Below, piece after piece: positions 53,343 to 57,712 of a stretch of DNA of 64,000 nt. Made by a program: the position numbers and the translations under genes. Source of the stretch: Tetramitus jugosus (lineage: Eukaryota; Protista; Heterolobosea). The stretch is taken from contig OW569362.1 of the NCBI GenBank assembly GCA_937625935.1, positions 186,001-250,000 on the forward strand. The letters are read 5' to 3'. The notes below the pieces were generated by a model that saw only the letters and a list, made by a program, of their open reading frames with translations, was not told where the DNA came from and searched no databases. The stretch's first letter is position 1. Every line of letters starts with the position of its first letter.

Positions 53343-54764
53343 ATGAGTCTCCAAGCGGATCATGAAGAAATGATTGCATTTCAAGAAGCAGCAAATGAAC
53401 AGGAACAACCTCAAAATGAGACAGAGCTGCCAAAAGAAGTTGAGCAACCATTACAAAAAACGGAGCAAAAAGAAGAAGGAGAAAATTCTCCAATCGAAGC
53501 ACAGGAAGAACAACAAGCGGTAGAAACTGAAGTTTTGCAGCAATCACCGAGATCATTCTCTCCAAGACCCATATTCATTGATGAATCCATACCTTACATG
53601 ATCATTTGTTGTCACAATCAATTTTGCTTGGATTGGAACACGAAACAGGCAAGACAAGTGGATCGTTATCATCCTCGTACATGTTTATCGAGTCAATTGA
53701 ATCCGTGTGTACGGAGTCAACTTTGGAATTTGCGTCGCGTGTTATTAAACTCTTCTGATCTGTCGGTAGAATCAGGAACGTCATTGAGCATGCCGGTGAC
53801 TATTGAGACATTTTTGTTGTGTGCAAATGAGTCGCAAGATTCAGTCTATGCAACCAATAATGGTAGTGGAAATGGCGGTAATGGTGGTACGCCCTCTTTC
53901 GCCGAAGTAGAAGAGCGTGCATTGGATGCCAATATTCAATCTCATATTTCGCAGTGGGATTATGCATTTCCAATGCCATTCTTGTACGGAAAACGTGAAA
54001 CTCACTTGAATCAATTATGGAGATTGCATCATGTGGGTAATGAGAACGCAAACACATTCTTTATCGTGAATCAGTCTCATGGGAAGTGCCTAGATGGCAA
54101 TGTCGATCTATGTGGACATGCAGATTTGAATTACAAGAGTCCTTATTTGAGACAATTCAAAGAGCAACAACCGATACGGAGTCAAATGTGGAAGATTCAT
54201 CCAGTAATTGCAGTGGGTTATGACCGGATTCCTTCGGGCAATTACTTAATTGTAAATGTGTCGAATGGAAGGTGTTTGGACAGTCAACCAGACAAAAATG
54301 GACAGACTTCATCGCTTCACCCTTGTGTATTCCTGGGTGAAAAATCAATGTACAATCCGTGCCTACATTGGCACTTGAAAGCCGCAGGCAACGATTCCTA
54401 TATTCTATCACCGAGATTTGATCCCGACACTAGACAACTGAGTGGAAAGCAAGAAATCAATGAAACAACTACGATACCTTTCCTTGTTCACAACGAAAGT
54501 TTGTTGCATGTGCACGTTGAAGAAGATGTGCCATATCGGCTGTGGAAGATATTTGCAGCACCTGGAGATGACACATTCTTCATTGTGTGTACAGCTAATG
54601 GGTTGTGTATCTCTGGATCATCTTACTCGTACCCAACAATGGAAAAAGTTGATTTGGTAGATCCCACTGCAACAGAAACAATGTGGAGATTGATACCAAT
54701 ACTGAAAAAGAGACAATCCTCGAGAATTGAAATTGATGAGATTTATCTGGAAACCAAGCAGTAA
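53343..54764 (+). CDS. Ricin-B (beta-trefoil) lectin-like repeat protein with acidic N-terminus
   Basis: Repeated I.N...G.CLD and Q.W motifs (SQLW, NQLW, SQMW, LHW, RLW, TMW). Confidence 0.65.
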   Translation: MSLQADHEEMIAFQEAANEQEQPQNETELPKEVEQPLQKTEQKEEGENSPIEAQEEQQAVETEVLQQSPRSFSPRPIFIDESIPYMIICCHNQFCLDWNTKQARQVDRYHPRTCLSSQLNPCVRSQLWNLRRVLLNSSDLSVESGTSLSMPVTIETFLLCANESQDSVYATNNGSGNGGNGGTPSFAEVEERALDANIQSHISQWDYAFPMPFLYGKRETHLNQLWRLHHVGNENANTFFIVNQSHGKCLDGNVDLCGHADLNYKSPYLRQFKEQQPIRSQMWKIHPVIAVGYDRIPSGNYLIVNVSNGRCLDSQPDKNGQTSSLHPCVFLGEKSMYNPCLHWHLKAAGNDSYILSPRFDPDTRQLSGKQEINETTTIPFLVHNESLLHVHVEEDVPYRLWKIFAAPGDDTFFIVCTANGLCISGSSYSYPTMEKVDLVDPTATETMWRLIPILKKRQSSRIEIDEIYLETKQ

Positions 54765-54818
54765 TATTTTATAGATAACAGACAATGGACCCAAAGTCAT
54801 TTTTGCTGGAACAAAAGT

Positions 54819-57712
54819 TTATGAAGTTCTACGCTTTCGATTGTTTCCTATGTCATCATCAGACTCGGAACTATTCGCATCTGTTGCAATATCTGCGATG
54901 TGCACTACTGGTGGTCGTAAATTATTCCATTCATTCGCTATGCAGTTTTGGAGCATAGCAGCAACAGAATACGCTTGTTCTAATGCACTTTACGGACAGA
55001 GTTAGTATTATGTGGAACAAGGTAATAAATAAAATATGCATAAACATACCACTTGAATCCTGGTTTGTTCTTGTGAAGAACAGCACACCTCCTCTCAGGA
55101 GATAAGTATGTGGCTGTTTGAAACTTTGCTCTAATGATTTGATCATGACTTATGGGTGTTGTGGGATATCTCTCCAAAAAGGTATTGACATCGAGAACAA
55201 CATCATTCATCGCCACATGATCAAACATAAAGTTATACCACACATCTCCAACATCATTATAGTCATAACTAGTTCGTTTCTGATTCATATCATCAGTAAA
55301 TGCTCTATAAAACCAGCGCATACAAGCATTTGCAGCTCCAGCATTCTGTGATACGAGGATGCAATTTTTTGCTGCGTCACAGCTGTCTACACCCAAGAAT
55401 GATAGAAAAGCTGACCATATACCAATCCAGTCATGCGAGCCGTCCTTCTCCGATACTCCATGGACATAAGCTCTTGTGTATTCCGCTATGGATTCTTTGT
55501 CTCTTGGTATTTTATGAGGATTTAAAATTTTGTGGAATCCATGCGTAATTGTTCCGTTCATGTTGAGTTGTATTGCTGCGATCTCAACAGGAATCACTGT
55601 CTCGATCGTAGCATTCGACAATGCAACCAAGCACTCAAAATCAATAATAAATATGCTGTCAATTCGATCAATTGCCCTACCCTCAGCTCTGTTTAACCGT
55701 ACACATACTTTGTCGAACACAGGCTTGTAGGATTTGACAAAAGTTTTGATAGTTCCCTTTGGATGAGAGAACAGCTCCTCGACAAAGCAATTTTGACTGT
55801 TCAAACCTCTGAGTACTTTCATAAAATATTTTACATCTCGTTTCTGTGCCAGTCGAGGCTGAAGTTTCTCTGCTTCCTCTCCCAACATGGCAGTAATTGT
55901 TTGCAACGTTAAAGTACGATAACCTTGGGGAATATCTTCCAAATCATAATCTTCATCATCGATGATTGGACAAGAGAACCCGATAGTGGCAATACAAGGG
56001 AGCACAGGATGATGAACAACCTTAATGTACTCCTCAATCACCTGTGAAATGCCACACTTTTGAACTAAAAGAGTCCGCAAGTCAGTCTTTCCTAAAATTC
56101 GCTTTGGATTCGCCACAATAATAAATCGGTCAATGTTGCTATCCATCGTTTTACTGAAGTTCGTATGTCTTCGATAGATGTGATTCATATTCGTTTTCAT
56201 TTTACTCACTTCGATTTCTTGAGTAATGTTCGATACAACGTCGCTAAACTTCCTCGTCTTCATATATCGTCTCCATGTTCGATCTTTCGTATTCATCTCA
56301 AAGAATACGCTATTCACAGTCATTTGTACATTGTCCATGAATTGATGCAACAAAATTTTCTCAACTTCACCAGCACCAGATGAAATGTATGTTCCAGATA
56401 AAAAATTGAGAATTCGCTCTTTGTTATGACTACTCACCATTTCGCAACCCTTAAACAACACTTCATTCAAGTAACGTGATATAATGCTCTTCTTTTGTGA
56501 TTCAGTGAATCCGTGTGCAATACTGGACAGAGAAACTTCTGTCGTTCGCTTTGTTGCTCCACTTGAATCAACAACGACCTCTGTAGATTCCAGCAAACGA
56601 ACAAGAGACTGTAGTAACATCATTGCTGTGCGCTCTGAGATAACTACACCAGATACGTGCTCCTCTGTCATAGTTTGTGTATCAATACCTCTACTTCTTC
56701 GATCAGACGATGAAGAATGTGCTGTTGTGGTTGAAACGCCTACCTGTTCATTGGTACGTCCGCCTCTACTATTGTAATGAGGATAACTCGAAGAAGATTG
56801 ATTGTTTCTATGACCAATACTACCTTCGTTATTGTATCCTAGTCTACGATCACCCCTTGATGCACCTCCCTCTCTGTTTTGCGGCGGGAATCGAGAAGGT
56901 GGTGGAGGTGTTGTTCGACCACTGCCATTCGAACGAGCACGTTCTGCAGCATTCGTTGGTAGAGGCAGTGGTGGTAGTACTGGCTTCTTTCGAATGGGAA
57001 TATTGAGTATATCATCCTCTCTCCGTGTAGGAGATGGATTCGCTGTTCCTTGATTCTGATCTCTATTGTCCATTGTTGCAGGAGCAGCTACTGTAGCTGT
57101 CACTGTTATTGCAGCAGTTTCAGATGCAAAAGTTGACGAAGACGGCGAACCTCTTCGTAATGCCGATTCCTGCTCATCCATCAATGAGTCTTCGTGTGGT
57201 TGCACCTTTACTCTTGCACCAAGATAGGAAGCATCATTTTGATCAACTCCACTGACATCATACTCACCACCATGTTCTGACAATCTCATTTCCTTCATTT
57301 CAACCCATTCACCCACATTGATGTTCTCTGAAAAATCAAACACTGAAACAATCATGGGCGTACTGTAACGATTGATTTGAATGAACACTGTCTCATCTGT
57401 GCTTGGTCTATTTAGCTTATAGTAGGAAAAATTACCTTCTTCTTTGACTGTGGTGGTAGTCAATTGACCCTCTTGGGCATAGTGATTATTGGTCATATTA
57501 TTGTGAATGTCATTGTTGTTGTTATGATGGATGTGATTGTTGGAAAAGCTTTGAGCTTGTTCTTGGTCCTCATCTTCGTCATCATCATCATCGTCATCAT
57601 CATCCACAACAGTGTTTAAATCAATGGGTCTACTTGGTGTGACTGACTGTTGTTGTTGCTGTTCATTGGAAGACATTATTGATGTGTCAGCTATTGTGTT
57701 TTTGTGGTGCAA
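54819..57712 (-). CDS. Maelstrom-domain protein with NELF-A C-terminal-like and RRM-like domains (~943 aa), 2 exons; intron 54988-55049
   Basis: IFIIDFE, IPVEIA, FHKILNP..IP, HG, CMRW and the spliced CAVLH......CAL (Maelstrom ECHC). The intron has a GTATGT donor, TACTAAC branch point and AAG acceptor. Confidence 0.7.

Follow-up and report, generated by a model that had tools for sequence, protein, structure and literature searches.

A single gene of the heterolobosean Tetramitus jugosus encodes a protein in which a homologue of the C-terminal domain (CTD) of the transcription-pausing factor NELF-A, an RRM-like fold and a Maelstrom (MAEL) domain are fused. Maelstrom is a helper of RNA silencing known from animal germ cells. 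The gene lies within the window, i.e., the whole stretch of 64,000 nucleotides that was analysed, and the fusion is old and is shared by at least three lineages. It is apparently undescribed: literature on Maelstrom and NELF in protists and Heterolobosea, covered incompletely and mostly without subscription papers, yielded no description of it. We infer, with a probability of about 0.4, that the protein acts in the nucleus as an RNA-binding adaptor without catalytic activity and couples PIWI silencing to the machinery of the paused polymerase.

Gene structure and transcription

The genome assembly (26.35 Mb, 56 contigs) is gene dense with short introns, and the gene was searched exon by exon. 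One minus-strand open frame spans positions 57712 to 54980, and the motifs named in an earlier, sequence-only reading of this DNA sit where it had placed them (NELF-A-like, 56464-56249; RRM-like, 56128-55847; Maelstrom, from about 55650). The product of 943 amino acids proposed there requires correction. Position 57712 is TTG, the first ATG is at 57676, and the spliced product comprises 875 + 1 + 55 = 931 amino acids, with its stop at 54821-54819 in exon 2 (Table 1).

Table 1. Features of the fusion gene and related genes of the Tetramitus jugosus genome (window positions unless a locus or contig is given)
Feature	Position	Strand	Description
Whole fusion gene, ATG to stop	54819..57676	-	Two exons, 931 aa
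Exon 1	55050..57676	-	875 codons plus two bases of Cys876; CTD, RRM-like part and most of MAEL in one open frame
Intron, 62 nt	54988..55049	-	GTATGT donor, TACTAAC branch point, AAG acceptor; splits last Cys codon of ECHC zinc site
Exon 2	54819..54987	-	Last MAEL helix, acidic patch, short basic C-terminal tail
Acidic, Asn/Gln-rich low-complexity N terminus	57437..57676	-	aa 1-80
Small conserved beta-meander microdomain	57293..57433	-	aa 82-128; common to orthologue P0003
Ser/Arg/Gly/Pro/Thr-rich linker	56657..57271	-	aa 136-340; probably disordered, from composition
NELF-A C-terminal domain homologue	56249..56509	-	aa 390-476; two helices and three-strand meander
RRM-like fold	55847..56128	-	aa 517-610; beta-alpha-beta-beta-alpha-beta, degenerate RNP motifs
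Maelstrom (MAEL) domain, across intron	54930..55651	-	PF13017 match; ECHC and DEDDh alignment
Ricin-B-like repeat protein, convergent neighbour	53343..54764	+	Synteny marker only
L001, second and only other Maelstrom gene	L001:1297-3108, contig C5	-	RRM-like fold with long acidic insert, then MAEL with D-E-E-H-D and ECHC; no CTD
L005, stand-alone NELF-A	L005:4179-6716, contig C19 about 92180-94715	-	845-codon frame; PF23553 NELF-A_N above cut-off and C-terminal domain
L044, probable NELF-B	L044:85-3114, contig C3	+	Only PDB sequence matches are NELF-B chains (E 0.0015); below Pfam COBRA1 cut-off
L015, Integrator subunit 2 (INTS2)	contig C9:293364-296156	-	Pfam E 6.7e-99; one in-frame TAA inside match (probably intron)
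L008 and L009, two PIWI-clade Argonaute genes	contigs C41 and C52

The splice joint 54987/55050 is present in three runs (X1, X3, and X9), of which two are RNA runs and the third has no recorded type. A single spliced transcript contig, 54400-56754, spans the CTD, the RRM-like part and MAEL together. Transcript contigs hold no information on transcript ends; the three domains share one frame regardless. The prediction of a single transcript, rather than two genes, is therefore borne out by the spliced contig and the uninterrupted frame. Transcript contigs of the fusion gene and of its ricin-B-like neighbour run into one another.

The linker tolerates in-frame indels between strains. The basic tail encoded by exon 2 is a possible candidate for a nuclear signal; it is not conserved in orthologue P0003. 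At amino acid 408 (window position 56455), other strains and all other aligned CTDs have Leu, and the Phe of the assembly is a variant.

A domain homologous to the NELF-A C terminus

A phmmer search with the CTD against 1.84 billion representatives returned seven matches: two further fusions (P0001 and P0003), four NELF-A-type C termini and a bacterial LRR protein (P0002), the last rejected as a repeat-driven match on 37 residues. The four NELF-A-type C termini (E values of 2e-6 to 6e-6) include a protein named negative elongation factor A from Acrasis kona and a Naegleria fowleri cluster, and the closest named protein relatives come from these two species. When the T. jugosus genome itself was searched with segment 56521-56201, the second place (E 7.5e-6) was the C terminus of the 845-codon frame of L005. 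A profile of five NELF-A C termini aligned with the fusion CTD at an hhalign probability of 98.7%. With profile A1, a mixed set of eight CTDs, human NELF-A 439-522 ranks first among 177,635 PDB sequences at an E value of 0.0053, and the NELF-A-only profile A2 gives the same stretch at an E value of 1.1, which indicates that the link to animal NELF-A is real but distant. Single-sequence PDB searches found neither NELF-A nor Mael, which only profiles retrieved, and Pfam gave no match for the CTD or the RRM-like part. The earlier claim that 56249-56464 resembles the NELF-A C terminus thus holds, and the likeness, as judged by these sequence comparisons, is beyond chance.

The folding alignment (A4) was built without the row of L001, whose N terminus MAFFT had placed onto the CTD. 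In the resulting AlphaFold2 model (mean pLDDT, 70), the CTD forms two helices and a three-strand meander. The top match of an Atlas shape search was an arthropod NELF-A cluster, with 96 residues aligned at an rmsd of 3.9 within model residues 4-142; its whole-model TM of 0.27 reflects the presence of two domains in the model. No solved structure matched the CTD in Foldseek or in a wide structural search of the two-domain model, Foldseek giving no match at an E value of 0.001. RuvB-like and Spy matches were nonsignificant, and AAA-lid look-alikes from an Atlas feature search, all with scores below 0.9, were likewise set aside.

The modest direct match to human NELF-A with either profile is what could be held in favor of an artefact, be it chance similarity, mis-assembly or two adjacent genes. 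This is hardly credible given the single open frame, the spliced contig across three domains, the occurrence of the same fusion in two independent samples and the agreement of sequence, profile and shape searches.

PF23553, the NELF-C-binding domain at the N terminus of NELF-A, has no match in the fusion protein, which is therefore not a NELF subunit. INTS12 docking as the function of the NELF-A CTD became known only recently, from a 2026 preprint: human NELF-A 431-528 binds the INTS12 PHD finger via R453, neither NELF assembly nor Pol II binding depends on this segment, R453A mimics NELF loss, and the authors propose that the CTD favors premature termination over pause release (bioRxiv 10.64898/2026.06.30.735463). 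The link to Pol II pausing drawn in the sequence-only reading needs correcting here, since the human CTD is a microdomain for docking on Integrator and is distinct from the part of NELF-A that binds Pol II. According to published surveys, NELF-A is of more recent derivation, and its non-core regions are divergent in unicellular organisms (bioRxiv 10.1101/2023.02.19.529146; PMC4940160). The column of human R453 holds Ser, Asn or Gln in the three fusions (Ser416 in T. jugosus) and Glu, Gln or Pro in heterolobosean NELF-A, and Arg occurs in no heterolobosean CTD seen. As R453 is not conserved, the human INTS12 interface is not transferable as it stands, and the partner of the CTD in Heterolobosea may be a diverged INTS12 or something else.

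The CTD could instead have been re-purposed, serving a structural role or lineage-specific protein binding and keeping no tie to NELF, Integrator or Pol II; the protein would then be a small-RNA biogenesis factor, perhaps cytoplasmic. The fusion CTDs do have longer branches in the CTD tree, the HEE motif that is invariant in heterolobosean NELF-A CTDs is altered in two of the three fusion copies, and an extra conserved helix precedes the fusion CTD; in addition, mouse Mael acts in piRNA biogenesis (PMC4408791) and Maelstroms acquire varied partner domains (PMC2628886). Nevertheless, we regard such re-purposing as rather unlikely, since the core residues persist although the fusions diverge from one another by 32-52%, and since the whole genome contains only two copies of the CTD, which is therefore not a promiscuous module here.

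RRM-like fold and N-terminal microdomain

The RNA-binding fold proposed earlier is upheld in its fold and not in its RNA-binding signature. The AlphaFold2 model shows beta-alpha-beta-beta-alpha-beta topology at about amino acids 517-610, and in the wide structural search nearly all of the 50 top-ranked rows are RRM-type chains (best Z, 7.4, a moderate value; rmsd, 3.3; 93 residues aligned). Pfam RRM has no match in the fusion, and the RNP1/RNP2 stacking positions are mostly aliphatic, with one Phe kept in P0003 only. Elsewhere in the genome, the RRM-like segment is found only at the N terminus of paralogue L001.

The N-terminal microdomain is 31% identical to that of P0003 and is modelled as four strands (pLDDT of about 75 over the first 40 residues). 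It had no match in Pfam, Atlas or PDB folds (best fold-search Z, 4.8), and its candidacy as a second CTD copy gained no support (hhalign probability, 0.1%).

A Maelstrom domain with an incomplete nuclease site

The C-terminal domain is Maelstrom-type, as had been proposed: exon 1 alone matches PF13017 at an E value of 2.8e-8 and 34.1 bits, above the curated cut-off of 22, and P0003 scores 61.7 bits. The ECHC zinc site is intact: its ligands (E698, C864, H868, and C876, whose codon is joined by splicing) do not vary in the alignment and are kept in all three fusions. Three of the five DEDDh positions, assigned by alignment and not by structure with the motif layout of PMC4408791 and PMC2628886, are lost (D679, E681, A782, K875, and Q880). 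The set reads D-E-A-K-Q here, D-Q-N-K-E in P0003, D-D-A-E-H in the other orthologue, P0001, and D-E-E-H-D in paralogue L001; the catalytic His is thus gone from all three fusions and retained in L001. With its PF13017 match and incomplete DEDDh set, the domain does not classify as an ordinary DEDDh exonuclease. By these residues, the MAEL domain of the fusion is probably a pseudo-nuclease, and L001 is probably an enzyme, a candidate active exoribonuclease.

Retention of 3'-5' exoribonuclease activity with a shifted site (D679, E681, and E879), which would make the protein a Pol II-tethered nuclease, is very improbable. D679 and E681 are present, an acidic residue adjoins the last-Asp position, and protist MAEL can be active (PMC4408791). 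Against this, the general-base His is replaced by Lys, Lys or Glu and motif II by Ala, Asn or Ala in the three fusions, and the second acidic residue is Gln in P0003.

No HMG box was matched in the fusion at E values up to 1, and none occurs in either Maelstrom gene of the genome. The idea that a NELF-A-like module and an RNA-binding fold had replaced the HMG box is not sustained: L001 already combines an RRM-like fold with MAEL, so that the addition of a NELF-A CTD copy to an RRM-MAEL protein is a simpler reading.

Conservation and history of the fusion

In orthologues P0001 (from a Logan run) and P0003 (with P0008-P0011, from JGI and Logan samples), which are 48% and 27% identical to the fusion protein, respectively, the CTD, the RRM-like part and MAEL follow one another in the same order. 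The intron falls at the same Cys codon in both (loci L006 and L049), the P0003 sequence itself being spliced, and the P0003 contig carries the same convergent ricin-B-like neighbor (45% identical; E 8e-107). Two metagenome contig scans found no further fusion loci; P0001 was the only fusion in a word-index search, with none from Naegleria or Acrasis among the matches listed.

In an unrooted tree of nine CTDs, the three fusion copies lie on one side of a branch with weak support (75/82). This separate grouping, together with an identity of only 26% between the fusion CTD and the NELF-A CTD of the same genome, suggests that the CTD was copied long ago and has been retained. The simplest history is an old RRM-MAEL duplication, with gain of a NELF-A CTD copy and loss of catalytic residues in one daughter, the order of events being a reconstruction.

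Pausing, Integrator and PIWI genes and a possible function

The search for partners suggested by the sequence-only reading was productive: besides stand-alone NELF-A, the genome encodes NELF-C/D, a probable NELF-B, INTS2 and two PIWI-clade Argonautes (Table 1). None of its 28 PHD matches is recognizable as INTS12. In two other genomes, one of them A. kona, a RalGAP-like gene is the immediate downstream neighbor of NELF-A (loci L054 and L055), an arrangement not seen around L005.

The adaptor function that we propose would date from the duplication of an RRM-MAEL gene: L001 would have remained a DEDDh exoribonuclease, and the other copy would have turned into a nuclear adaptor that binds RNA without catalysis, a change that animal Maelstrom would have undergone independently. 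Its pseudo-nuclease MAEL domain, aided by the RRM-like fold, would hold nascent RNA marked by PIWI-small RNA complexes, and its CTD copy would dock on whichever partner is bound by the CTD of the stand-alone NELF-A; in humans, that partner is INTS12, a subunit of Integrator. Docking could then bias Pol II at PIWI-marked loci toward prolonged pausing or premature termination, with the fusion acting beside NELF and not as a NELF subunit.

This proposal is supported by the domain identities, the spliced transcript contig, the conserved fusion with its old CTD copy, the loss of the catalytic His in all three fusions and the presence of the NELF, INTS2 and PIWI genes, although the co-occurrence of PIWI, NELF and Integrator genes in one genome is not evidence of interaction. 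Support also comes from animals. There, Mael takes part in transcriptional silencing guided by PIWI, at an unknown step that lies downstream of H3K9me3 or in parallel with it (PMC3504300), and tethering Mael to RNA reduces the output of Pol II (PMC7732180). Given the two PIWI-clade genes, a link of the fusion to small-RNA silencing is plausible. The proposal is weakened by the missing R453, by the lack of a recognizable INTS12 among the PHD matches, by a Maelstrom-PIWI link that is established only in animals, the amoebozoan MAEL tested being a plain exoribonuclease (PMC4408791), by the lack of most RNA-stacking aromatics in the RRM-like part and by a basic tail that P0003 does not conserve.

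The same domains could serve PIWI-independent co-transcriptional RNA quality control, in which the CTD attaches the RNA-binding MAEL/RRM part to Pol II during pausing or termination, or else contends with NELF-A for the NELF-A partner. Prematurely terminated transcripts or snRNA-type ends would then be handled and possibly fed to the active paralogue or the exosome. The CTD does point at pause/termination machinery that the genome possesses, and MAEL is a DEDDh-fold domain for handling RNA ends, for which PMC4408791 and PMC2628886 hold no PIWI link in protists. We nevertheless consider quality control doubtful, as every genetically studied Maelstrom belongs to the piRNA pathway (PMC4408791, PMC3504300) and two PIWI-clade genes are present.

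The fusion hints, from its domain composition, that small-RNA silencing may be able to plug into the pause-or-terminate step of the polymerase. In its boldest form, which we hold to be unlikely, a catalytically dead Maelstrom would stop Pol II at small-RNA-targeted loci by showing a NELF-A CTD mimic to the Integrator/pause machinery within one polypeptide. If so, this protist lineage would have hard-wired into one chain the step still unexplained in animal piRNA silencing, and the docking function of the NELF-A CTD would predate the Discoba-animal split. The field still lacks an explanation for the shutdown of Pol II by Maelstrom downstream of PIWI (PMC3504300, PMC7732180), and the conserved fusion provides a testable hypothesis for both fields, namely, that Maelstrom-dependent silencing may act via a pause/terminate checkpoint. 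Regardless of function, the NELF-A CTD exists, without R453, in Heterolobosea (L005, Acrasis, and Naegleria), far beyond animals.

Comparison with known systems

The human NELF-A CTD (431-528) and that of the fusion have homologous sequence and a common predicted fold, and both follow a long disordered tether. In contrast to the human domain, the fusion CTD is internal and not terminal, has Ser in place of R453, is joined to an RRM-like fold and MAEL, and is not accompanied by the NELF-A N-terminal domain.

With animal Maelstrom (HMG plus MAEL), the fusion shares the ECHC zinc site, the loss of DEDDh residues and the presence of PIWI-clade Argonautes in the same genome. Unlike animal Maelstrom, it has no HMG box and carries an RRM-like fold, a NELF-A CTD, a beta microdomain and a long disordered linker. 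Because the same genome has an intact paralogue, the loss of catalytic residues looks independent of that in animals; regardless of function, the nuclease site of a protist Maelstrom thus seems to have disappeared in parallel with that of animal Maelstrom. The protist MAEL nucleases, represented by Entamoeba EHI_192630 (PMC4408791), share with the fusion a MAEL fold with ECHC in a protist. Paralogue L001 (D-E-E-H-D) fits this type, whereas in the fusion the His and two acidic positions are gone and three further domains are present.

Domains reported to accompany MAEL are HMG, HDAC_interact (in mosquitoes) and SR-25-like (PMC2628886); such fusions of MAEL with a chromatin or RNA-processing module offer the same kind of Rosetta-stone clue, and no NELF or Pol II elongation module is among the partners in that survey. 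The fusion protein is a member of the MAEL family joined to a member of the NELF-A CTD family, distinct from an animal-type Maelstrom, from an intact protist MAEL nuclease and from a NELF-A subunit.
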